From contig NIVC01001119.1 of assembly GCA_002269645.1 (NCBI GenBank), positions 186,001 through 250,000 on the forward strand: a DNA stretch of 64,000 nucleotides, given 5' to 3'. The notes under the pieces are model-generated. The model saw nothing but the letters and a program-made list of their open reading frames with translations, did not search any database and had not been told where the DNA came from. This document shows positions 9,091 to 47,375 of the stretch, in pieces; position 1 is the first letter of the stretch; each line of letters opens with the position of its first letter. The translations under genes and the position numbers were made by a program. The stretch is from Macrostomum lignano (Eukaryota).

Positions 9091-10413
9091 TAGAGCCTGA
9101 CCAGGATAGGAAAAATCTGATTGGGCAGGATTGAATTCAAAAAGTCGGGACTCAGGATTGGTCGGGATTGGGATAAAGATCTACCATTGGCATCCAGGCT
9201 TATTTAGGTATATGATGGCTAATGATGCATTTATTACTATAATATATAGGATAGTAGGCACATTTATTAATTTGTATTAGCAGGCCCTAGTCAAGTGATA
9301 ATACTACTACTATATTAGCCTAACTTGTAGTTTAGTATAAGTTGGTACTACTGAAGCAAGAGCCTAGACAAACTCAGGTTTTGGTCAAGTCAAGTACTTG
9401 ACCAAACTTTGACATAAACATATTCTAGAATCTAGGAAATCAAAATAACCTTGAAATAAAAAAAGAATTGTGGCAGACAGGTTGCCACCTTGATCATTAT
9501 TTTCTGTTAATAATTTTTAGAAAACTTAATTTTCTGCAAAATCATTATGTGCTCCAACCCCCAGAATTTTTGTTTTATTTCAACCCTTGCTTTTCACGTC
9601 ATCATCTTGGCCATTGACCTATCCCCATCCTAGTTTTATTTTCTCTATTTTCCCACCTGTGGCCTGTTTGTTTCCTTGCTCTTGGTTACTTAACTTTTTC
9701 AACATTATTTCTACGTGAATTATGCTCCTGTCCAACGTTCTGCCCTAATATTATAGCCTAATATTCAGCTAATAATAATAACAACTAACCACATTAATTT
9801 TCATTAATTAATTAATTAAGCCCATAGCCTATCTTGAGTACTTTGCCCGTGAGACATAAAATATCCAAACAGTTCTCATCTCACAGAAAGCTCTGGGACT
9901 AATTTGTTCCATAATACAAAAATTACAGTGGTGGCAGCTCTATCTTACTGATAGTAATTCAGCTAAACACATCTGATATACATTGACTTTGGTGTCAGAG
10001 ACCCAATTTGAACAATTGTGTCATTTAATATGCTGAATTGCAACCACAACTACCCTCCCCAGTAGCCGGAGTAAGAAAATTAGAGAAAATTTTGTGATTC
10101 ATCTGCGCAAATTCCGGAATAATTTATATAAGCTCAACGCCAGCAGAATTTCAAAACATCAAACTGCCCCAACAACTAGCCAAATTCTTTTTTCCACCCA
10201 CCTCAGAATCAATTTGGCATACTTGCCTCATTTAGTCCTTTCAAAATCTCTTCTAAATGATTTTTATAGTATACTTAAAATGTAAAAACTTTTTATTAAA
10301 CCTGCCCAACTTTTCCCAACTCCAAAACTTACTCCCAACATGGTCAAGAATCTAAAAAAACACCCAGGTCCCAACCAAGTCAGAATTGGGATTGGGATCC
10401 CAGTCGGGCTCTA
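9091..10413. mobile_element. Non-autonomous hAT-like element
   Basis: TIRs TAGAGCCTGACCAGGAT and TAGAGCCCGACTGGGAT; 8-bp TSD CCACCTCA (9083-9090) and CCACTTCA (10414-10421). Confidence 0.75.
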
Positions 10414-10986
10414 CCACTTCATACAGATATACACTAGCTTCTAACTAAGATAAGTTTGCCAAGATAGCAGATACTTCAAGTGATCCAAACAAAGCTTTAC
10501 TTTTTTAATGGAAATTTTCCCCCAAAGTAGCCTTATATCTTTATATTAAATCAAAATCACTATGGTTGAAACTACCAAATATAACTATTAGACTATAATA
10601 GAAACTTTGATATATCAAAATAGCTACAAGCACAAGGCTAATGATCGTAAAAAAAATAAAATAACCATAAAACCACAAAGCCACTAAAAGGTTTTAAATG
10701 ATTTTTAAATAGTCTAATTATGATTTTAGGCTTTAAATTGCAAAAAAAGATTGCTTATAATAAAACTGCATGGAATGGTCTTATAATATCCATAGTAGAT
10801 ATAATTCAAATAAATAAAGAAGCATTATTTTAACTATTGTATCAAGCCAAAAAGTCTAAAATACAAATCAAAAGTTGGATTTTAAAGTTAATAAAATAAT
10901 AAAAAATAGGCTTCATTAACTTTTTTTCTAGCTACTATTGATATATAAATAAAATGAAATAGATATATTATTCATCAATATATAAT

Positions 10987-11060
10987 ATGCTTGGGCACAA
11001 CCTAGGGATTCACCCAGCTATTTCTATTGGCAAGTGATTCCCAAGGTTGCACATGTATGA
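10987..11060 (+). mobile_element. Shortest copy of a hairpin-type interspersed element (family also at 22259 and 31879)
   Basis: ATGCTTGGGC-CAACCTAGGGATTCA...TGATTCCCAAGGTTG-CACATGTATGA; both ends shared with 31879-31992. Confidence 0.75.
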
Positions 11061-11941
11061 TATATAACTTTCTAAAAGTATGATTTTTCAAATATAATTA
11101 TAGTCTTAGTATAAAGTAATTGAATAGGAGTTCAAATCTTGAGGTCTTAAAATAATAAATGGCAAGAATTAACTTATTTTTATAAAAATTTAATATGTGA
11201 CCATTGTGATATACTAATTAAATCTAATTAATAGGTATAAGCATAAAATTAATATACAGGGTCTAGGCATAATATCATGTCATTTGCTAGAATGCTAGCA
11301 AATGACAGTATGCTAGAAAAATTGGCTATATGTTTGAACCAATTGCAAGGACTATTTAAGTAAAAAGACAAGAAATGTTGTATTTTTAGAAAATTTAAAA
11401 TGGAAGTAAAAGACATGTTTTTATTTTTTAGCATAAAAACTGTTTTTTCTTTGAATTGGAAGTAAACCTAATGTCATATTTTGATATTTTGTGCCTTTTT
11501 ATAGTCTTATTATCTACTATTAATAAAATAATATGTGATTGTTTTTTATTAGGGACCTTTATTAGGCCTAGGGCCTACTCTATTAAATTTAAAAATATTT
11601 TTTAACTAAAAATGCTTTTTGATAAAATGTATACTATAATCTTCCACTTAAAGTAGAAGCTTATGTTATAATAAATTTGTTTAAATATAATATAATATAC
11701 TTTATGTAATAACAATCGCTGTAATGGTTGACTAGCCAATGTTAGCTTGTCACATTTAATTATTAATTGTTTTTGGTCTAACCTTGCTTATTATTTGTCT
11801 ACACCAGTATACCTATCATCTCTTTTTAAAGTAGGCCCTAGGCCTATTATAAATGTATATATAGAGCCTTAGAAGCTTTTTAAGCAAATATTTTCTTGCT
11901 CTTATACACCCTACTGCCTTAGGGCCTAGTTGTTAAATCTA

Positions 11942-12242
11942 GGCAATGGCTAAAGTTCCGGCACCGGAACCCATTTTCTAATGGCTACGGATCTAGCAGT
12001 GCCATTATAATATAGATGAAACAATATATTTTTCTTTCTACATGTGGCTGATATTGAGATTTTGTTCTACATTAAAATTTAAGACAATATGATAAGATTC
12101 AGGACGAGATGCTTCTAATATCCAGTCTTCTTAAGATATGTTCTTAGCAGTCTTTATTTATATGCTTCTATAGGCCCTACTGCACTGCCGGATCCCTAGC
12201 TGTTAGAAAACGGGTTCCAGTGCCGGAACTCTAGCCATTACC
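11942..12242. mobile_element. 301-bp MITE with 9-bp TSD (Mutator- or Merlin-type)
   Basis: About 60-bp imperfect TIRs starting GGCAATGG/GGTAATGG; perfect 9-bp TSD TTAAATCTA at 11933-11941 and 12243-12251. Confidence 0.85.
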
Positions 12243-12636
12243 TTAAATCTAATAGGCCCTAAATTATTCATGGGGCTCATGGCTAGGTAGGGCCTAGGGT
12301 TTTCTTTTTGGCCAGAGAAAAGATACAAAATTGCACCTTATGCTCACTTTCGTCTTTCAGGGTGCAATTTTACAACTTGGGGTACAATTTTTCTTTTTTT
12401 AAAGGCAGTGCAAATGAGGCTTCAGTGGAAAAATAGGTTAGGAGACCATACCTAAACTGCACCCACTTCAATTTCAATGTGCAATTTTAAAATTTAGGGT
12501 GCATTATATGCACACTAGGTGGCAATCTTTTACTTTACTGCATTTAATTATTTTAATGGTTCTTTTAAATTTCAGAACATAAAGATAGTAGGAGGATAAA
12601 AGGTAAGTGTCTTTAAGTGTCAGGTAAATCAATTAG

Positions 12637-12910
12637 TCAATAATAATAAGCCACCCAGTATAGGAAGTTGCCAAACTCCTTTCCAGGAAAGAGATAGGCC
12701 TAGCGCCAGAGATACTCGCTGAGATGGCTTTCAAACAGAGCTTTGGAAGTGCCATGCATCACCTAGATTCTTGGAACTTTGCCTTGACATGGGCCCACGA
12801 CCCCTCAATGGTGTTTGTGTGGATCAATGGCCAATGGGTCGTTAGGGTTGGAAAAATGGAGTTGATGATTCACGACATCGTGGTTCTGCAAGTCATTGTA
12901 GGCCTCCCAT
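12637..12910 (-). pseudogene. Merlin (IS1595/ISXO2-like) transposase relic, C-terminal exon
   Basis: Across frameshifts and stops it reads WEAYNDL..VVNHQLHF..HTNTIEGSWAHVKAK..GTSKALFESHLSEYLWR..GKEFGNFLYWVAYYY*, matching the ISXO2/Merlin DDE C-terminal motifs. Preceded by a TTTTCTTTAG acceptor. Confidence 0.8.
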
Positions 12911-14527
12911 CTAAAGAAAAGTGAAAAATAATTAAACGCAGTAAAGTAAAAGATTGCCCACTAGGCCTATGTGTACAAAAAATAAACCTAAGCTTCCCAA
13001 GAGCATCAACAGTAATTGTTGCATCACATAGACCCCTAGGCCTATTATTATAATGGAAAATGAGCTTTAGGATCACAACTTTTGTCTACAACTACAAGAT
13101 ATCTAGGGCCTATCAAGATAGGCATAGGCCTACAAAAACTCTAGAAATAATGATCCAGTGGCTGGGCTTAGGCTTAGCAATCATGGGATTATTAAAAAGC
13201 TTCTTAATTGTCACCAAATTTGACTTAACTATTGCCATATTTGCTTTTGCCAATTTGTTTGTTGGTCGGCGAGCTAAAAATGCCTTGTTTGCCAAAAGGG
13301 CGTCAATGATAGTGATGATGGACTGGACAGCAACAGCTATGCTGCTGTAGGAATTGGTTTCAGTGCCTGCAACAAAAAGTACATGAATTAATTTTTTGTT
13401 TGAATTATCTGTTTTAAATGAAAAAAATATGTCGGGAAACCCAAACGTTCGTGACGTTCATGTCTACGTCTATCTACATGTACTGATATGACTAAGGCAG
13501 GCAACAATCCATACATAACATAACCCATTTTGACAATAAAACTGACAGCAGAGACTACTAGAGCGGCTTGGGCAAGCAGGGTAGTAGACTAAATATACTA
13601 AAAATGGTTTGTCGGTATGTCAGTGTGTCTGTCTGTCGGTATGTGATCAATTATCATTGCAGAGACGCTAAAGAGACGCGCGCGCACGTAACAAATGGTA
13701 AGTAATCAAAAGTTAAAAAATAGACTTACGCAAACAAATATTTATAAGCAGTTGCACGCTTTAGGATTTGAAAGTATCTCAAAAAGGCATAGAATATATG
13801 AAGCATATTTACCTAACATTATTTTTTAAATACCAACAAATTAAATACAAATTCAAATTGAGGCCCTCTTCTAATTCATATTGATTTCTTACAACGCGTT
13901 GAATGCTTGTGCTTGTTTGTTCGTTGTAAGAACAGAACTATCTCAGTATCTGGTATCTGTATTAGGTCACGTCTAAGCTGAACATCTGGTCTGACTGGTC
14001 TTAAATGGAAAATGCGGCTATTAATATAATAAAGCCTAGGCTGTATAATTATAAGCCTTGCCCAACAGTAACAAAAGCATCATAAGCACATTAGCACACG
14101 CCACAATTTCGATTTAGCTTGTAGTTGTAGTGTACTAATATATATAGGCTAGGCCCCCTATTATTGCTAGAGAAAAAATCAATTTTTCAACACATATATT
14201 AGGGACTTTTGTTTAGTAAAAGTCCCATGTCTTGCCAATATGAATATATTTTTAGACAAGTCTGATTAAAAAAAGATTTTTTTAAAGTTTTTAAAACTTT
14301 TTTATTCAATTTATACATAGGCCCTAGAATAAGATTAAGAAGCAGTATAAAATAGGAAACAAAATACTAATACTTTTCATGGAAAAATAATGTTATTAAA
14401 ACTATGTCATCTTTTTTATTTATTAAAGTAGGGACTCCAATGTGATTTTGAAAGTTAAAAAAATTCAAGAGGTCTATCTCTTAATAAAATATGATGGACC
14501 TAGAGCTTGATTATATGAGTAAAAAGA

Positions 14528-30402: not shown

Positions 30403-31578
30403 GAAAGCCAACCGTCTGCTGTAACAGTGGCAGCAACAGCGCCACAGTGCGTCGCAGCTGAAGCTTCACATTCATCTGAGAGCCAAGTTGAAGTTAACAA
30501 ACTAGTTGAACTAACAGATTGCAATCTTAACTTAGAAGCAAGCCAGGGTCGAAGTCAGCAAGCTAATAAACAACGATTTAAACAAGCGCGAGCGCCTCCG
30601 CCTGCAAAACAACAAGCTGAGGCATGCCAGTCATTGAATTTCCGTAATCCAGTAACCGCACGTTATCCAAACACGGATCAGTTGTGGCACAGAGTTGGAG
30701 AATTATCCCTATTCGATTGGTCAGTGTCCGGCAACGAGACTTGCATAGTAGTTCGCGGTCGAGGCTTCTGCATCGCTCTAGACGTTGGCGCCTGCCCGCC
30801 GCAGGCTGTGGACGCCGATCACGTGTTTATTAGTCACGGTCACGTTGATCATTGCGGCGCATTGCACATGCATATTAGAAAGCGTCAGTTGCTTAGACTG
30901 CCACCGGCTGTCTACTACATGCCCGAATGTCTAATAAATTCAATGCAATCTACATTGGCTGCATTTGTTACCATGCAAGGTGACAGCGACTATGCGGAAA
31001 TGGTGTCCAACTCTAGACTTGTCGGTTTGAAAGTTGGCGATCGAGTTCCAATTAGTAATGACAATAATCAGCCTGCCGATGCAGCCAGTCTGACCTTGAG
31101 CGTATTCGCTACTGATCATCGGGTGCCCAGTTTGGGCTGCATATTGCGCCGTAGACACATCGTTTTGCTGCCTGAATGTCGTCGACTGAGCCAGGATGAG
31201 CTGCGAGCACGGGTTGCTCAGGGCCTGCCAGTGCGCGGTCCCGAGTGGGAGCCGTTGCTAGGCTACACTGGAGACACCAGATTCAATGTATTCTTAACGC
31301 CGCAAGATCCGGACTTGTTGCGCGTTAGATTGCTCATTTCCGAGTTGACATTTTTGAGTGGTTCGATTGAACGCGCAGATAGTTTTGGACATTGTCACGT
31401 TGATCAATTTGCGCAGCATTGGAGACTGTTTGGCGCTGTGAATCGGCTTGTGTTTGTGCACTTTAGCAATAAGGTTTTGCCGGAAGAGATTCTTGAGCGG
31501 GTGTACTCAACTTTGCCTCAACAGCTGGGTCGCAGAGTCTACTGCGGACTGATTGCCAAGAGATTGCTGTATTCATGA
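30403..31578 (+). CDS. TM-type short-form tRNase Z (metallo-beta-lactamase fold), paralogue 1; 5' end at an in-frame acceptor
   Basis: WSVSGNET (EGxSxxG-like), SHGHVDH, TDHRVPSLG, GYTGDT, SELT, GHCH and VHFS motifs. The first genomic in-frame ATG lies downstream of HxHxDH. Confidence 0.8.
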   Translation, partial: ESQPSAVTVAATAPQCVAAEASHSSESQVEVNKLVELTDCNLNLEASQGRSQQANKQRFKQARAPPPAKQQAEACQSLNFRNPVTARYPNTDQLWHRVGELSLFDWSVSGNETCIVVRGRGFCIALDVGACPPQAVDADHVFISHGHVDHCGALHMHIRKRQLLRLPPAVYYMPECLINSMQSTLAAFVTMQGDSDYAEMVSNSRLVGLKVGDRVPISNDNNQPADAASLTLSVFATDHRVPSLGCILRRRHIVLLPECRRLSQDELRARVAQGLPVRGPEWEPLLGYTGDTRFNVFLTPQDPDLLRVRLLISELTFLSGSIERADSFGHCHVDQFAQHWRLFGAVNRLVFVHFSNKVLPEEILERVYSTLPQQLGRRVYCGLIAKRLLYS

Positions 31579-32920: not shown

Positions 32921-33793
32921 TGTCTGTCAGTGCCCGATCCCCTCCTGCCCCTGCCGGCATGGATGGCTGGCCTGTTTGCCCTGCTAATCGCTGTTGGCTT
33001 TGTGCTCAGCCTGTACCTGTGGGAGCTCGGCTCGGCCAATGCTCGAGCTGGGGTTGATCGCGACAATCCTAAAGTGATTATTCGCAGGTTTCTCGGCGTC
33101 TCAGCGGTTAGTTTAAGCGTGCTAATCTGCTATAGGTACTTTCTGATGAAGCCGACAGCTGCCAGCTGGTCAGATGTGCTCCAGCTGATCGGTCTGAGAT
33201 GGTCCGGAATGCTGCCAGCTGTTGGAGCATCCTTGTTGCTAACCGCTATTCTGTTCACTGGCCCGATTCTGCTAGCCTGGGAGACTGGCGACGGATTCTT
33301 TGATAGGGAACCGCTGCTGAGTTTGAGATGCTGCCGCACTTTAGTGTTGGCTCCGGTCACTGAGGAGCTGTGCTTTCGCGCCCTGATGCTGCCGGTGCTG
33401 TGCGTTCATCTCTCTTGCACTCGGGCGGCCTTCCTGTCGCCGCTGTTCTTCGGCTTGGCGCATTTTCATCATTTGATTAACCGGCTACAGCGCGGCTATC
33501 CGCTTGTGCCCAGCCTGATTCAGGCAACGTTTCAATTCTCCTACACTTACATATTCGGCGTGTATTCGGCCTACTTGTATTTGAGAACTGGCCAGTTAGC
33601 TGCCGCCTGCGCCGCGCATTCCTTCTGCAATCTGATGGGTTTCCCTGATTTTGAGGCGCTGGCCAATCTGCGAGGAATTAAGCTGGCGGTGCACGGCGGC
33701 GCCTTTGTTTTGGGCTTGGTTGGTTGGCTGGCCCTGCTGGGGCGGCTGACCGAACCAGCGATGTTTGCTTCGCAGTGCGACTGCTTCTGGTAG
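32921..33793 (+). CDS. RCE1: CAAX prenyl protease 2 (CPBP family)
   Basis: EELCFR, FGLAHFHH and HSFCNLMGFP catalytic motifs plus multiple TM helices. Start is either the in-frame acceptor at 32920 or the ATG at 32963. Confidence 0.92.
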   Translation, partial: CLSVPDPLLPLPAWMAGLFALLIAVGFVLSLYLWELGSANARAGVDRDNPKVIIRRFLGVSAVSLSVLICYRYFLMKPTAASWSDVLQLIGLRWSGMLPAVGASLLLTAILFTGPILLAWETGDGFFDREPLLSLRCCRTLVLAPVTEELCFRALMLPVLCVHLSCTRAAFLSPLFFGLAHFHHLINRLQRGYPLVPSLIQATFQFSYTYIFGVYSAYLYLRTGQLAAACAAHSFCNLMGFPDFEALANLRGIKLAVHGGAFVLGLVGWLALLGRLTEPAMFASQCDCFW

Positions 33794-40016: not shown

Positions 40017-41045
40017 ATGTCCCATAGTGACGAGGGTGCGGAGACCGCCAAAGCGGCCAGTTGGGTCGAGTTTTTTGCCGACCAACCGCAGAACAAGCTG
40101 CGAGTGTTCGACTGGTCAGTGTCCGGCTTTGAGACTTGCATAGTAGTCCACGGTCCCAGCTTTCGTCTGGCGCTGGACATTGGCGCCTGTCCGCCGCAGG
40201 CAATCAGCGCCGATCACGTGTTCATTAGTCACGGTCACGTGGACCATTGCGGAGCACTGCACCAGCACATGCGCCGGCGTCAACTGGTAGGCCTACCACC
40301 AGCTACGTACTACGTGCCGGGGCATCTGGTCCAGCCGCTGATTGACATTGCTCGGCTATTCAGCGTCGTACATGGCGACGAAGACGAGGACAACGAAGGA
40401 GGTTCTGCGAAACTGTCGACGAAAGATAAAAAATCCAAGAAAGAGGATGCCACTGTCGCAGACGGTGCCTCAGCCGAAGCTGGGAGTGACGAAATAAAAA
40501 TCTACGGCAAAATTGTAGCCGCTACTCCGGGTGACGATCTGCAACTGTCAAAGAATCTTCGCATTCGTCCGTTCGCCACAGATCATCGAGTACCCAGCAT
40601 TGGCTGTCTGGTGTACTGCAAGCGCAGCCAGTTGCTACCCAAATATGCCGGCCTGCCGGGTGCGGAACTTGCCGAACTGGCTCGCAACGGGGAACAGTTA
40701 CGAGAGGCTCGGTGGGAACCCGCTATCGGCTATACAGGGGATACCAGATTCACTGTTCTAGCGTGTCCTCCCGAACCCGACCTGCTCAAGGTTAGACTGC
40801 TAGTCTGCGAGCTAACCTACGTTGAAGGGCCGACAGATACAGCTGAGAAATACGGTCATTGTCATTTGCACGATTTCTCGTCGCGTGCAAATCTGTTTGA
40901 CAATGTTGGCCAGCTGTTGTTTGTGCACTTTAGTAGGCGGCACTCGCCTGACCAAGTGATTAACGCTGTGCTGACTTCGCTGCCAGAGGAGCTACGGTCT
41001 AAGGTCTACTGCGGACTCAATGCTCTGCGGTTCTACCGTTCCTGA
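40017..41045 (+). CDS. TM-type short-form tRNase Z, paralogue 2, intronless, 342 aa
   Basis: WSVSGFET, SHGHVDH, TDHRVPSIG, GYTGDT, CELT, GHCH and VHFSRRH motifs; AATAAA at about 41080. Confidence 0.85.
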   Translation: MSHSDEGAETAKAASWVEFFADQPQNKLRVFDWSVSGFETCIVVHGPSFRLALDIGACPPQAISADHVFISHGHVDHCGALHQHMRRRQLVGLPPATYYVPGHLVQPLIDIARLFSVVHGDEDEDNEGGSAKLSTKDKKSKKEDATVADGASAEAGSDEIKIYGKIVAATPGDDLQLSKNLRIRPFATDHRVPSIGCLVYCKRSQLLPKYAGLPGAELAELARNGEQLREARWEPAIGYTGDTRFTVLACPPEPDLLKVRLLVCELTYVEGPTDTAEKYGHCHLHDFSSRANLFDNVGQLLFVHFSRRHSPDQVINAVLTSLPEELRSKVYCGLNALRFYRS

Positions 41046-41276
41046 ATGATACTGACTTATTTTACTATTCTATTAGTACAATAAATAAAGTTTATACTGA
41101 TGTTTTGCCTTTGTTTTCTCAGACAGTTTTTAATAAAAAGTTTTAAACATCGTGTCTTTGATTAATTCAACTTTCTATTTTACAAACTAAACTGTAAAAA
41201 TTTCAGCTAGAATTTCACTGCCGTAGCTACAAAACTGAGCTGATTTCGATTCGGAGCTGCACTCCAAACATTAATT

Positions 41277-41597
41277 ATGACTGCCGAGGTTAAACATGCT
41301 GCGGGGTTGGACAGCCGGCAGCCTCCTATGAAAGAGGTGGGTTTTTTGCACTTTCTGTAGGAGTGGCCTGTTGTGTGCCTTGTCTGTCTGCCCTGTCCTA
41401 TTCTGTCTGTCTGTTCTGTCTGCCCTGTCCTATTCTGTCTGTCTGTTCTGTCTGCCCTGTCCTGTTCTGTCTGTCTGTTCTGTCTGCCCTGTCCTGTTCT
41501 GTCTGTCTGTTCTGTCTGTCCTGTCCTGTTCTGTCTGTGTTCTGTCTGGTTGTCTGTCTGTCTGTCTGTCTGTCTGTTCTGTCTGTGTTCTGTCTGG

Positions 41598-41629
<32 letters not shown>

Positions 41630-41855
41630 TCTGTCTGTGTGTTCTGTCCTGTCCTGTTCTGTCTGTCTGTCTGTTGTCTGTCTGTCCTGTCCTGTTCTGT
41701 CTGTGTTCTGTCTGTTCTGTCCTGTTCTGTCTGTGTTCTGTCTGGTTGTCTGTCTGTCTGTCTGTCTGTTCTGTCTGTGTGTTCTGCCCTGTCCTGTTCT
41801 GTCTGTCTGTCTGTTGTCTGTCTGTCCTGTCCTGTTCTGTCTGTGTTCTGTCTGG

Positions 41856-41929
<74 letters not shown>

Positions 41930-41946
41930 GGTTGTCTGTCTGTCTT

Positions 41947-42014
<68 letters not shown>

Positions 42015-45000
42015 CCTGTCCTGCAGACCTGCATGATCCACCTTACTACTCCATTTGCATTCCATCCCAGCTGCAATTCGCTGTCAACATGACCTGTCAA
42101 TCATGCGCCGACTCGGTCAGTCGAGTTCTATCCAGTCACCAGCCGGCAAGCGACTTCGCGGACATCCGAATTCAACTGACTGAACAGCAGGTCATCCTGC
42201 GCACTTCGCTGCACGTTGACTCAGTGCTGGAGCTGCTGGAGACCACCGGCTGTCGGGCTGTGCTGCAAGGCGTTGGCACAGCCAGCCAGGGCATGCGGGG
42301 TCAGGACTTCGCATCTGGCGTCGTACAATTGGAATCAGTTTATACTACTAATACTAGTAGTGTCCAGGGAGTAGTTCGAATTTTGCAGCCAGACGATCAG
42401 CAGTGCCTGTTCGATGGCACAGTGGACGGTCTGGAGCGCGACAGTTGGTACAGCCTCGAGGTCCGTCAGGGCGGTGATCTGTCTGGGGGGTCTGACACAT
42501 GTGGTCCGGTGTATAATGACGGCTCTGATGATGCACAGGTGCGTTCTGTGTTATATATCCCTGTTTTTGTCTGTCTGCATCTTGGGGTGTACGCTCTCTC
42601 ACCTTACAGCATTCGCTCTCTCACCTTACAGCATCCGCTCTCTCACCTTACAGCATCCGCTCTCTCACCTTACAGCATTCGCTCTCTCACCTTACAGCAT
42701 CCGCTCTCTCACCTTACAGCATCCGCTCTGTCACCTTACAGCATCCGCTCTCTCACCTTACAGCATCCGCTCTCTCACCTTACAGCATCCGCTCTCTCAC
42801 CTTACAGCATTCGCTCTCTCACCTTACAGCATCCGCTCTCTCACCTTACAGCATCCGCTCTGTCACCTTACAGCATCCGCTCTCTCACCTTACAGCATCC
42901 GCTCTCTCACCTTACAGCATCCGCTCTCTCACCTTACAGCATCCGCTCTCTCACCTTACAGCATCCGCTCTCTCACCTTACAGCATCCGCTCTCTCACCT
43001 TACAGCATCCGCTCTCGCACCTTACAGCATCAGCTTCCTCATCAGTTACAGCATCCGCTCCCTCATCAGTTACAGCATCAGCTTCCTCATCAGTTACAGC
43101 ATCCGCTCCCTCATCAGTTACAGCATCTGCTTCCTCATCAGTTACAGCATCCGCTCCCTCATCAGTTACAGCATCTGCTTCCTCATCAGTTACAGCATCC
43201 GCCCAGTATCTGTCAGCATCTGTCTCATGTTGCAAACTGAAAAAATATCTGATAGAGTTATTTCTGTAGACAAGGTTTAGCTATAAATGTTTTCAGCCTG
43301 CCGAAAAGACATTTATATACATAGAAACATACAAAAAATCAACTAACAACAGCGTCTCCATGGCAACTCAAATGCCTACGGCCTGACCAGCGTGCTAGCG
43401 GACGAGTTGACCTGCCCGCGGCCTCATCTAGTCCCAGTCGCCTCAGGTTTCCTATCCAACGATTTGCGACCGCTAAGCGGCTTGCAAAAGTTTCTGGCCG
43501 CTAATTTTCCCGCCCCAGACTTGCGGCATCTGAAGCGGGCCGCCCCGGCCGCCTCCGCGCCTGACTGCAGTCGCCGATTTCGCGTTCTCCTTTGCCACGC
43601 CGCCGACTTACCTAATTTGGAATGTTCTGAAGAATTTTCAACGATTTGGAGACCTAAATTAGATAGCGTAGAAATTGTTATGGCGCCGGGTAGTGCGCCG
43701 CGTACCAGGCGACAATGGGAGCTCACTTCCGGTTATTGGCCCTGCTCGTTTCATGCTGACAAGTCTATCGAATCGGAGCTGTCGTTGGATTGCTTTACTA
43801 AAGCTGAAGGTGTCGCTTGTCTGAGGCATATGCTGCGCTCGCTGGCTCTCGGTCGAACTTCCGGTTCTGCGTCTGCCGATACTTCCGGTCTGAAACCCGC
43901 ATCCACTTCCGGTTCCACGTCTGCTGATACTTTCGGCCTGAAACCCGCTTTCATTTCCGGAGCCGCGTCTACCGATACTTCCGGTCTGAAACCCGGTTCC
44001 ACGTCTGCTGATACTTCCGGTCTGAAACCCGGTTCCACGTCTGCTGATACTTCCGGTCTGAAACCCGGTTCCACGTCTGCTGATACTTCCAGTCTGAAAC
44101 CCGGTTCCACGTCTGCTGATACTTCCGGTCTGAAACCCGGTTCCACGTCTGCTGATACTTCCAGTCTGAAACCCGGTTCCACGTCTGCTGATACTTCCGG
44201 TCTGAAACCCGGTTCCACGTCTGCTGATACTTCCAGTCTGAAACCCGGTTCCACGTCTGCTGATACTTCCGGTCTGAAACCCGGTTCCACGTCTACCGCT
44301 ACTTCCGGTCTGAAACCTCCTTCCGCTTCCGGTTCCGCGCCTGCTGATACTTCCTGTCTGAAACCCGCTTCCACTTCCGGTCCTGCATCCGCTTCATCTT
44401 CTTCTGCATTCGCCGCTCTGCGCCTCCCAGTCCCCCAATCGGCCTGTCTAATCGTGGACCCTCGCACCGACACAGTGCTGGTGGAATGCCAAGACGAGCG
44501 CCGCCTCTGCCCGACCTGGCACGCCACCCTCCGGGCCGTCCAACAGCTGGGCGGCCGAGGCGACTACCTGTGCACCGGCCTGGACGCTTACGTCACCGAC
44601 GAGCCGTGCCACATGTGCGCTATGGCGCTGCTGCACTCCCGGGTGGCTCGGGTTTTCTACTGCCGACCGAGGCCGCGCGGCGCCCTCGGCAGCATCGCCA
44701 AACTGCACTGCCATCCGCGATTGAATCATCGGTTCCGCGTGTACCGACTTTTCCCTCTGAGTGCGGCTCGAACTGGGGAGAGTTGACGGTTGGATTGCGA
44801 TTCTTGCTTGCTCTTTAACCTGGCCCTTTGTCGGCCACCGTTGTCCTTCAGTTGGTGTAGCTACCCTTCAGTTGGTGTAGCAACCCTTCAGTTGGTGTAG
44901 CAACCCTTCAGTTGGTGTACCTACCCTTCAGTTGGTGTACCTACCCTTCCGTTGGTGTAGCAACCCTTCAGTTGGTGTACCTACCCTTCAGTTGGTGTAC

Positions 45001-45571
45001 CTACCCTTCCGTTGGTGTAAGCAACCCTTCAGTTTTTCCACTACCCAGTCTACCCTGTACCCTAATCTTCTGCGTTCTACTTTGTTCTCCTGCGCATAAA
45101 TCTATGGCATAAATAAAAGCCAATTGAAGTGAAATAATGGACGCCTGCATTTATAGCATTTTGTCTCGCTTCTTATTGGGACACTTTAAAACAAGTAATG
45201 CAAATTTTTGTTGCAATGTGCGTATCATACTACTTTTTCGTTAGTTATTTTTTTCAATCAATCCTTCCCAGTCTGACGATCCCTCCGGACTGGTCGGTCG
45301 AGTTTACACTGGGCCGAGTGGGCGGCTTCGATTCAGCTTGATTTCGAATCGACTTCGCTTATGGAATCTTGTGGGCCGCTGCCTCACAGTCAGCAAGTCT
45401 GCCGGTTGCAGCGAGAACGTCTGCGCCGCTGGCATTGTGGCGCGATCTGCAGGGCTATTCGCCAACGACAAACGAATCTGCTCCTGCGATGGCGTTGAAA
45501 TTTGGAGCGAACGCGACGTGCCATCGGTTGGGGCTGGTAGAGCCGCTGCTGCGGCCGCTTTGAAAAAGTGA
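41277..45571 (+). CDS. CCS: Copper chaperone for superoxide dismutase, 3 exons, about 275 aa
   Basis: Exons 41277-41336, 42071-42538 and 45272-45571, all phase 0. HMA domain [12 protein letters not shown], a SOD-like domain, and domain [13 protein letters not shown]...RICSCDG (CxC). Confidence 0.9.
41375..42020. repeat. Compound (TCTG)n/CCTGT microsatellite in CCS intron 1
   Basis: Source of the long CLSV and TDRQ pseudo-ORFs. Confidence 0.97.
42590..43200. repeat. 22-bp (CATCCGCTCTCTCACCTTACAG) then 24-bp (CATCAGCTTCCTCATCAGTTACAG) minisatellites in CCS intron 2
   Basis: Direct inspection. Confidence 0.95.
43353..44786 (+). CDS. ADAT3: tRNA adenosine deaminase subunit ADAT3 (Tad3), nested in CCS intron 2
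   Basis: N-domain SVLADE...PDLRHLKR and YWPCSFH; deaminase domain with HATL (no catalytic Glu), [23 protein letters not shown] and GALGS...LNHRF. Own AATAAA at 45112. Confidence 0.92.
44830..45030. repeat. About 20-bp minisatellite (CCCTTCAGTTGGTGTAGCAA) in the ADAT3 3' region
   Basis: Direct inspection. Confidence 0.9.
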
Positions 45572-45809
45572 ATGCATTCAGTCTGACGATATGTATCGAA
45601 ATAATATTTTTATTGCACTTTAAAAATTTATGAGCTTTGCTCTGCAGGAAACTTGAGTACGAGTGATTATTTTACAAGCGTACAAATTAGATCTTATGTG
45701 GCCGTTATGTATCGGAAATTGTCTAGTTACTTAAAATCGTTATCAGAATTGATTTAACTTGCAGCCTAATTTTATATGCCACTGCCACCATTTGGAGTCG
45801 GATTTGGAA

Positions 45810-47375
45810 AATTTTTTATCTCAAGGGTCAGGGAAAGAAAACAGAGCATGGCTGCGGGCCAGAGGAGGGGAGAAAGGAGATAGAGGAATAAGAGGAGAGG
45901 AGATGAAAGATAAAATAGGAGAGAAGGAAAGGGAGAGCTGATGAAGGAGATTAGAGAGAGTAGAGAAGGAAAGGGAGAGCTGATGAAGGAGATTAGAGAG
46001 AGTAGAGAAGAGAGAGGAGTGGAGAGAAGGGAAGGGAGAGGAGAGGAGAGAAGGGAAGGGAGAGGAAAGGAGAGAAGGGAATGGAGAGGAGAGAAGGGAA
46101 GTGAATGGAGAGGAGAGGAGAGAAGGGAATGGAGAGGAGAGGAGAGGAGGGAGAGGAGAAGAGGGAAGGGAGAGGAGAGGAGAGAAGGGAATGGAGAGGA
46201 GAGGAGGGAAGTGAATGGAGAGGAGAGGAGAGAAGGGAAGGGAGAGGAGAGAAGGGAAGGGAGAGGAGAGAAGGGAATGGAGAGGAGTGGAGAGGAGGGA
46301 AGGGAGAAGAGAGGAGGGAAGGGAGAGGAGAGGAGGGAGAGGAGAAGAGAGAAGGGAATGGAGAGGAGAAGAGAGAAGGGAATGGAGAGGAGTGGAGAGG
46401 AGGGAAGGGAGAGGAGAGAAGGGAATGGAGAGGAGAGGAGGGAAGTGAATGGAGAGGAGAGGAGAGAAGGGAAGGGAGAGGAGAGAAGGGAATGGAGAGG
46501 AGAGGAGGGAAGGGAGAGGAGAGAAGGGAATGGAGAGGAGAGGAGGGAAGTGAATGGAGAGGAGAGGAGAGAAGGGAAGGGAGAGGAGAGAAGGGAATGG
46601 AGAGGAGAGGAGAGAAGGGAATGGAGAGGAGAGGAGGGAAGTGAATGGAGAGGAGAGGAGAGAAGGGAAGGGAGAGGAGAGAAGGGAAGGGAGAGGAGAG
46701 AAGGGAATGGAGAGGAGTGGAGAGGAGGGAAGGGAGAGGAGAGGAGGGAAGGGAGAGGAGAGAAGGGAAGGGAGAGGAGAGAAGGGAATGGAGAGGAGAG
46801 GAGAGGAGAGGAGAGGAGGGAAGGGAGAGGAGAGAAGGGAGAGGAGAGGAGAGGAGGGAGAGGAGAAGAGAGAAGGGAGAGGAGAGAAGGGAATGGAGAG
46901 GAGAGGAGGGAAGTGAATGGAGAGGAGAGGAGAGAAGGGAATGGGGAGGAGAGGAGGGAAGTGAATGGAGAGGAGAGGAGAGAAGGGAAGGGAGAGGAGA
47001 GAAGGGAATGGAGAGGAGAGGAGAAGAGGGAAGGGAGAGGAGAGGAGAGGAGGGAGAGGAGAAGAGAGAAGGGAGAGGAGAGGAGGGAAGGGAGAGGAGA
47101 GGAGGGAAGGGAGAGGAGAGGAGAGGAGGGAAGGGAGAGGAGAGGAGGGAGAGGAGAAGAGAGAAGGGAATGGAGAGAAGAGAGAAGGGAATGGAGAGGA
47201 GTGGAGAGGAGGGAAGGGAGAGGAGAGAAGGGAATGGTGAGGAGAGGAGGGAAGGGAGAGGAGAGAAGGGAGCTGAGAAGAGACGTTCACCTTGAGCGGG
47301 CCGGATTGCTATTGTGAATTTTAAAATTAAAACCCGGATACAGAGGCTCTGCGGGCCGAAGTTTGAGGACCCCTG
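45810..47375 (+). mobile_element. GA-tract hAT MITE family copy with a polypurine expansion of about 1.4 kb
   Basis: CATGGCTGCGGGCCAGA left part; ACCTTGAGCGGGCCGGATTGCTATTGTGAA...GTTTGAGGACCCCTG right TIR; left TIR degenerate. Confidence 0.8.

Follow-up and report, generated by a model that had tools for sequence, protein, structure and literature searches.

Two described systems come close to the locus reported here, in which a gene for the tRNA deaminase subunit ADAT3 (Tad3) lies inside an intron of the CCS gene, within a 64-kb stretch of DNA of the flatworm Macrostomum lignano (the window; assembly Mlig_3_7, GCA_002269645.1, contig NIVC01001119.1). The first is the group of flatworm messenger RNAs whose start codon is donated by a trans-spliced leader (SL). 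According to the literature, every flatworm leader has AUG at its end. For Schistosoma mansoni, the SL AUG lies in frame in 28% of trans-spliced transcripts, and over 40 cDNAs depend on it (Cheng 2006, as related in PMC9851317). The M. lignano SL is CGGTCTCTTACTGCGAAGACTCAATTTATTGCATG, ending in ...TTGCATG, and is received by approximately 30% of the genes, with an enrichment for conserved genes (PMC8629364). Its terminal ATG was noted as a start codon by the Macrostomum authors (PMC10468722). The second system is human ADAT3, which is nested in SCAMP4.

As for the M. lignano locus, a complete single-exon ADAT3 open reading frame (ORF) at 43353-44786 and an AATAAA at 45112 are found on the + strand within CCS intron 2. 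The deposited CCS protein contains the host junction 42538>45272, which spans both the ORF and the AATAAA. No start codon is present at the beginning of this ORF. Since the nesting is real and the start codon is missing, the initiator must come from splicing. We lean towards the reading that the ADAT3 AUG would be supplied by the SL, trans-spliced at 43353, with polyadenylation after the signal at 45112.

Organisation of the locus

Positions are those of the whole stretch. The locus used for comparison with other copies (L001) is window 31277-55571, with identical sequence, and its positions 10001-14295 correspond to window 41277-45571. Two further CCS loci, L002 (NIVC01001184.1) and L003 (NIVC01000206.1), were taken from the CCS protein cluster, which has two more members on other contigs. 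The comparisons with these copies rest on DNA alignments. In both L002 and L003, the nesting on the same strand within CCS intron 2 is also present. The host gene and the nested gene are laid out as follows, with lengths in nucleotides (nt).

41277..41336, + strand: CCS exon 1, 60 nt, 20 codons, phase 0, donor GTGGGT
41337..42070, + strand: CCS intron 1, nearly all (TGTC)n microsatellite (41381-42020)
42071..42538, + strand: CCS exon 2, 468 nt, HMA (MTCQSC) and first SOD-like half, phase 0, donor GTGCGT
43203..43352, + strand: AT-rich unique spacer, GC content 0.33, which would serve as the outron or intron tail upstream of ADAT3
43353..44786, + strand: ADAT3 (Tad3) single-exon ORF, 477 codons and TGA, without genomic initiator
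43360..43386, + strand: two out-of-frame ATGs, at 43360 and 43372, in frame +1, with the common stop TGA 43384-86
43857..44381, + strand: coding minisatellite of 36-nt and 48-nt units, within the ADAT3 linker from the N-domain to the deaminase domain
45112..45117, + strand: AATAAA, presumed poly(A) signal of ADAT3, 154 nt before the acceptor of CCS exon 3
45272..45571, + strand: CCS exon 3, 300 nt, second SOD-like half and domain III (ICSCDG), stop TGA 45569-71

All coordinates given in a preliminary description of this DNA (CCS exons, ADAT3 ORF, AATAAA, ATGs and stop) are correct. It had pointed out three features, namely nesting in sense, a private poly(A) signal and an absent start, and all of them recur in each of three independent genomic copies.

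The joined CCS product has 275 amino acids and shows 100% identity over 100% of its length to PAA72037.1 (BOX15_Mlig003964g2), whose annotated gene span equals window 41277-45571. The exon at 45272 belongs to this gene, which excludes the possibility, raised earlier, that it comes from a different CCS copy. All CCS junctions are in phase 0, both introns follow GT...AG and both acceptors end in CAG. At the host junction, exon 2 ends in GATGATGCACAG and exon 3 begins with TCTGACGATCC. The GenBank annotation was built from RNA-seq with StringTie, TACO, TBONE and TransDecoder (PMC5730564), and 42538>45272 is therefore an annotated transcript structure.

In terms of protein identity, human CCS (6fp6_B) aligns end to end, over residues 14-270 and across the exon 2/3 junction, with E=2.8e-41. 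The product carries MTCQSC in domain I (HMA), a SOD1-like domain II and ICSCDG (the CxC motif) in domain III. The Pfam HMA and Sod_Cu matches are slightly under the gathering cut-off.

Identity of the nested gene

Judged by its sequence, the nested ORF is ADAT3, the non-catalytic subunit of the tRNA A34-to-I34 deaminase. Mouse ADAT3 (7nz7_B) matches with E=5e-39 over both the N-terminal and the deaminase domains (query residues 37-291, chain residues 52-303), which is well outside the range of a chance match, and PF00383 is found with E=2.6e-10. The ADAT3-specific N-domain is present, with HLKR (43527-38) and WP..FH, and residues L57, H59, K61, R62, W129, P130 and F133 are invariant in the alignment with homologues.

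In the deaminase domain, the zinc ligands are present as the His of WHAT and as PCHMC (44604-18), with the PC.MC columns invariant in the same alignment. The catalytic Glu of HAE is replaced, with H-A-T found here (within 44517-28) and HAV (mouse), HAA, HTA or HCT in homologues. The motif LNHRF follows at 44721-35.

The missing start codon

The ADAT3 frame is open from 43347, just after a TAA at 43344-46. It runs past an AG at 43351-52 and ends with the TGA at 44784-86. Both nearby ATGs stop within a few codons in frame +1, and the first ATG in the ADAT3 frame is only found at 43680, which is codon 110. A small intron leading from ATG 43360 or 43372 to the ORF was rejected, as the stretch contains no GT donor.

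Another explanation for the missing start would be an error in the assembly. If one base were missing between 43375 and 43383, a 1-bp gain would bring both ATGs into frame, and the protein would start at 43360 or 43372 (MATQMPT...) on a transcript from an intronic promoter. The assembly is PacBio-based, and a homopolymer difference is found nearby (CCCC against CCC at 43543, in L002 and in an ML2-derived model). Moreover, a TATAAA is present at 43283. However, this TATAAA is not kept, reading TGTAAA in L002 and L003, and the runs involved in the supposed error are just 2 nt long. The sequence ACGGCCTGACC reads the same in three loci that were assembled separately and that differ from one another 10 nt downstream. 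In fact, the three copies agree over the whole of 43318-43393, a stretch that holds the acceptor, the two out-of-frame ATGs and their frame +1 stop, with differences between the window and L002/L003 at 43394 and 43397. According to the published assembly methods, Illumina DNA and RNA-seq reads were also used to polish the assembly with Pilon. This identity, together with the polishing, makes the 1-bp indel considered in the preliminary description unlikely, and we regard this explanation as highly improbable.

Conservation across the three copies

The last 35 nt before ADAT3 (43318-43352, with CTAAC, the TAA at 43344-46 and the AG at 43351-52) are invariant in the three copies. The remaining upstream spacer, the 115 nt of 43203-43317, diverges by 11% (13 substitutions, plus 4 indels), and the 237 nt of the downstream spacer, 45035-45271, by 3.8% (9 substitutions, plus 2 indels). 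Within the 905 nt of non-repeat ADAT3 coding sequence, we found 5 synonymous and 3 non-synonymous changes across the three copies (0.9%). The two changes that precede the first in-frame ATG, at 43394 and 43397, each fall on a third codon position and are synonymous in the ADAT3 frame. The AATAAA at 45112 is kept in L002 and L003. The length of the ORF varies with the copy number of the minisatellite, with 477 codons in the window, approximately 415 in L002 and 375 in L003.

These data bear on a second explanation, by which the nested copies are relics without expression, or give only a product shortened at its N-terminus, from Met110 (43680) or from a non-AUG codon, with a functional ADAT3 elsewhere. 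No copy is annotated as ADAT3, the acceptor looks weak and the linker minisatellite expands freely. L002 also has a 1-bp deletion, CCCC to CCC, at window 43543 (L002 ~12462-12466), which breaks the frame. The same deletion is implied by the ML2-based model A0A1I8F9L7, and it may be either a homopolymer error common to both assemblies or a real pseudogenising change.

On the contrary, the window and L003 both carry an unbroken ORF. Conservation of the coding sequence exceeds that of its flanks 4-12 times, with an excess of synonymous changes that includes the part upstream of Met110. This upstream part is homologous to the ADAT3 N-domain and must therefore be translated. Among 5.8 billion proteins, no other M. 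lignano ADAT3 was found, except for a chimeric model of this locus type. Furthermore, ADAT3/Tad3 is, to our knowledge, essential and universally conserved across eukaryotes. From its pattern of substitutions, the ADAT3 ORF appears to behave as a functional gene, and we consider a relic or a truncated product to be quite unlikely.

Source of the initiator codon

The M. lignano SL ends in AUG, and trans-splicing at 43353 therefore gives an in-frame initiator, making a fusion with CCS unnecessary. When the SL ATG is joined to 43353, the sequence reads ATG CGT CTC... and forms an uninterrupted ORF of 478 codons. By direct reading, 43353 is the only in-frame exon start after a CAG in the 5' stretch of ADAT3. 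We thus have an in-frame AG acceptor and no usable genomic AUG before the conserved coding region. At the other end, the + strand of 41133-45700 holds no AATAAA or ATTAAA besides the AATAAA at 45112-45117. The same scan found no poly(A) signal upstream of ADAT3 within intron 2, and the geometry is therefore unlike that of a standard downstream cistron.

In the proposed mechanism, the 35-nt SL would first be trans-spliced onto the acceptor AG at 43351-52. Cleavage and polyadenylation would then take place after the AATAAA at 45112, with a 3' end expected near 45130. The terminal AUG of the SL would be read in frame as M+RLHGNS..., giving a protein of 478 amino acids, and the predicted SL-to-43353 junction would join ATTTATTGCATG to CGTCTCCATGGCAAC. 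The CCS mRNA needs the opposite choice, where donor 42538 pairs with the acceptor at 45271/45272 and ADAT3 is removed as intron. The maturation of ADAT3 would hence compete with the splicing of CCS exon 2 to exon 3.

The precursor of the ADAT3 mRNA would be either the CCS/tRNase Z pre-mRNA, in which case the two outputs are mutually exclusive, or a transcript from an intronic promoter. Mutual exclusivity per transcript, as put forward in the preliminary description, is reasonable but depends on ADAT3 lacking its own promoter.

Other acceptors were tried and rejected. TTTTCAG before 43297 and TGTAG before 43270 lead into frame +1 in the window, where only a short ORF as far as 43386 would result. 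A 7-nt insertion in L002 and L003 restores the frame after TTTTCAG, but the reading then meets the TAA at 43344. Two further AGs, at 43389-90 and 43397-98, are not in frame, and GACGAG before 43407, although in frame, is not credible. Long inverted repeats able to loop out ADAT3 were searched for and none were found. An SL RNA gene was also looked for within the 64-kb window and not found.

Several observations weigh against SL trans-splicing at 43353. Rich in A and without a pyrimidine tract, the acceptor AAAAATCAACTAACAACAG reads CAACAG, which departs from [T/C]TNCAG. This motif (YTNCAG) is present at 44% of M. lignano trans-splice sites (PMC8629364); as the figure is only 44%, the mismatch weakens the SL reading and does not exclude it. 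A better-looking TTTTCAG is found upstream, at 43290-96, though out of frame. On a CCS pre-mRNA, the acceptor at 43353 has cis donors upstream, and in that situation the nematode rule favours cis-splicing (Conrad 1993, as cited in PMC8629364). Flatworm acceptors are also extensively common to cis- and trans-splicing (PMC12582326). In addition, the transcriptome-based GenBank annotation lacks ADAT3, yet the 5'-partial coding sequences (CDSs) of its neighbours were kept. No transcript-assembly proteins were found for the ADAT3 site, and the protein searches gave only genome-derived M. lignano entries.

The upstream cis donors and shared acceptors are also the basis for a different origin of the start codon. 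Here, CCS exon 1 (41336) or exon 2 (42538) would be spliced to 43353, with polyadenylation at 45112 and translation starting at ATG 41277. The product would gain a harmless leader of 20 amino acids by the exon 1 route, or HMA and half of the SOD-like domain by the exon 2 route. The exon 2 junction would join GATGATGCACAG to CGTCTCCATGG and the exon 1 junction CCTATGAAAGAG to CGTCTCCATGG, with the ADAT3 side beginning in CGTCTCC. Both donors are in phase 0, and exon 1 or exons 1 and 2 joined to 43353 read without a stop, so an in-frame fusion from either exon, as previously suggested, is indeed possible. The phase match, however, is a 1-in-3 coincidence per donor.

Human ADAT3, to which the exon 1 route bears a resemblance, uses a promoter in common with SCAMP4, on the same strand (PMC2568002), and the precedent drawn in the preliminary description stands. 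A junction of exon 2 to 43353 (DDAQ followed directly by RLHGNS) is found in the UniProt entry A0A1I8F9L7, but this entry is an ab initio chimera with three frame changes and not transcript evidence. The annotation, based on the transcriptome, gives only the 275-amino-acid CCS at all three loci, whereas a fusion isoform would have a longer complete ORF. Furthermore, exon 2 ends at CCS residue 176, inside the Sod_Cu match (residues 118-219). The exon 2 route would therefore leave half a beta-barrel, which makes the functional HMA/SOD-like-ADAT3 fusion that had been proposed improbable as a purposeful copper-binding protein. Taken together, we see cis-splicing as an unlikely source of the initiator, and prefer trans-splicing of the SL at 43353.

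Probable transcriptional unit of CCS and tRNase Z

Upstream of CCS, two further features are found.

40017..41045, + strand: tRNase Z short form, ELAC1-like, 342 amino acids, with its own ATG; match to RNase ZS1 (7xgt_A) with E=1e-43
41080-41089: AATAAATAAA, downstream of the tRNase Z gene

There are 232 nt between the tRNase Z stop and the CCS ATG. In L003, the tRNase Z copy is PAA88019.1 (Mlig003964g5) and CCS is g6, with the common prefix Mlig003964. Such prefixes were assigned per assembled transcriptional unit (PMC5730564). We infer that tRNase Z and CCS are co-transcribed, with tRNase Z upstream, and that the SL machinery resolves their precursor. Given the common prefix, this machinery would already be acting on the precursor in which ADAT3 lies. 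The copper and reactive oxygen species to tRNA-editing switch imagined in the preliminary description found no support, and the functional link, if there is any, would be with the upstream co-transcribed tRNase Z.

This arrangement allows for a bolder idea, which we hold to be doubtful. ADAT3 might be an intron-embedded cistron of the tRNase Z-CCS operon, without its own promoter, each of its mRNAs aborting a CCS pre-mRNA. If true, SL trans-splicing or in-frame splicing of exon 1 to 43353 would be followed by intronic polyadenylation, and the CCS:ADAT3 ratio would be determined by the weak but fully conserved acceptor. A tRNA 3'-processing enzyme of the same unit would share its regulation with ADAT3, and the cleavage would leave CCS exon 3 placed like a downstream operon gene. 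Along with SCAMP4/ADAT3, this would suggest that ADAT3 repeatedly evolves the borrowing of a host promoter.

Three side observations concern the same unit. tRNase Z and ADAT3 are two tRNA-maturation genes, with CCS between and around both. The acceptor of CCS exon 3, 154 nt past the ADAT3 AATAAA, has the geometry of a downstream operon gene. Finally, the SL AUG joined at 45272 would be in frame and give a 100-codon ORF for the C-terminal half of CCS, in which the CxC motif is included.

Absent annotation and a chimeric public model

In the GenBank annotation of the three loci (the window locus, L002 and L003), there is no ADAT3 gene. The likely explanation is that a same-strand intronic transcript was treated as a minor isoform of the host, with an isoform-fraction filter of 0.75. 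The sole public ADAT3 protein is A0A1I8F9L7. In this model, after CCS exon 2 is joined to 43353, there are three frame changes and a read-through of the ADAT3 stop, and the sequence continues into CCS exon 3. As it hops frame three times, it gives no evidence of a fusion transcript. We rejected it for this purpose as an ab initio CCS-ADAT3-CCS chimera, made on the error-prone ML2 assembly.

As for the literature, neither "ADAT3" nor "Mlig003964" is present in the supplements of PMC5730564, PMC5816591 and PMC12896417, and no publication mentioning Macrostomum together with ADAT3 was found. The deposited annotation of the main transgenic flatworm model would gain by adding ADAT3, which it lacks, and by retiring the chimera.

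Neighbouring genes and repeats

Two neighbouring genes are built in the same way, with a stop ahead of a consensus CAG and then an ORF in frame with the SL AUG, a likeness that favours the SL reading for ADAT3. The first is an MBL-fold gene of 387/388 amino acids at 30403-31578 (L003 2758-3933), a tRNase Z-like paralogue of the 342-amino-acid gene. A TAA is followed by TTCTTCAG and by the exon start at 30403, and the first in-frame Met is only found at codon 156. Its CDS, PAA88017.1, is described as "partial". The second is an Rce1-like CAAX protease of 289 amino acids at 32921-33793 (L003 5677-6549), with the acceptor TATTCCAG and the exon start at 32921. It corresponds to PAA88018.1, also "partial", which starts 3 nt after a consensus acceptor.

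Both ORFs are in frame with the SL AUG, and their GenBank CDSs begin 3-12 nt after the acceptors. The MBL-fold protein is probably complete by way of the SL AUG. The common prefix of the two genes, Mlig025095, suggests a second two-gene transcriptional unit. More generally, the window suggests that 5'-"partial" CDSs in the annotation are often complete proteins, with the first codon coming from the SL.

Two satellites flank ADAT3.

42592..43202, + strand: 22-nt satellite CGCTCTCTCACCTTACAGCATC, approximately 27 copies, in CCS intron 2, with YTNCAG in every unit
44845..45034, + strand: 20-nt satellite CCTTCAGTTGGTGTAGCTAC, approximately 9 copies, in the presumed ADAT3 3' untranslated region, with YTNCAG in eight copies

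YTNCAG stands in nearly every unit of the two arrays, as CCTTACAG in 27 cases and as CCCTTCAG in 8. The stretch 42592-43202 holds 27 YTNCAG in 611 nt, compared with 6.2 per kb window-wide. Evidently, CCS splicing skips all of these satellite sites.

After the CCS 3' end, there is a purine-rich GA satellite of 1.4 kb (45891-47283). Satellites with a comparable strand bias seem to be common in the window, judging from blocks of strong GC skew at 36-40 kb and at 46-52 kb.

Comparison with known systems

The closest likeness is with the flatworm mRNAs that take their AUG from the SL, termed "slORFs" (PMC9851317). The ADAT3 locus has in common with them an SL ending in AUG, an ORF in frame directly after the AG and no earlier AUG. 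It differs in that SL use would here be predicted from the sequence, in that the acceptor lacks YTNCAG and in that the site lies inside an intron of another gene, whereas the usual sites are at the 5' end of a gene or in an operon spacer.

The polycistronic units of M. lignano (PMC5730564, PMC8629364) resemble the locus in being compact and on the same strand, with a unit prefix and repeat-padded spacers. A normal operon member, however, follows the poly(A) site of the preceding gene, whereas ADAT3 sits between two exons of an operon member. Because of this position, the maturation of the host and that of the nested gene compete and do not coexist.

Chimeric models have been described at flatworm operons, with such mis-annotation affecting 21% of predicted operons (PMC12582326). 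A0A1I8F9L7 is similar in fusing CCS and ADAT3. It differs from them in joining a host to its intron-nested gene, with invented mini-introns that repair the frame.

Human ADAT3 in SCAMP4 is also a single coding exon, in sense within its host and dependent on the 5' end or the alternative processing of the host. Unlike the human gene, which carries an ATG, the flatworm copy is without one, and it can make use of trans-splicing, a process absent from humans. The host is different as well (CCS and not SCAMP4), and the arrangement therefore arose independently. In Xenopus tropicalis, the deaminase region of ADAT3 has a match in a RefSeq protein named "multiple inositol polyphosphate phosphatase 1 isoform X2", which hints that frog ADAT3 shares exons with another host gene. 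ADAT3 homologues on two long eukaryote contigs (L004 and L005) have no CCS neighbour and are uninformative on flatworms.

The locus offers a compact test case where cis-splicing over a 2.7-kb intron is set against the SL at a weak internal acceptor and against intronic polyadenylation. Consensus acceptor motifs, dozens of which lie in the tandem repeats of the same intron, have to be ignored. M. lignano is capable of transgenesis, so these splice choices are open to direct reporter study.

The ingredients are already known, as SL-donated AUGs, M. lignano polycistrons, nested genes, the ADAT3/SCAMP4 pair and chimeric models have all been described. What is new is this case, an unannotated essential gene that is nested in an operon member, has no genomic start and is found in three homeologous copies.

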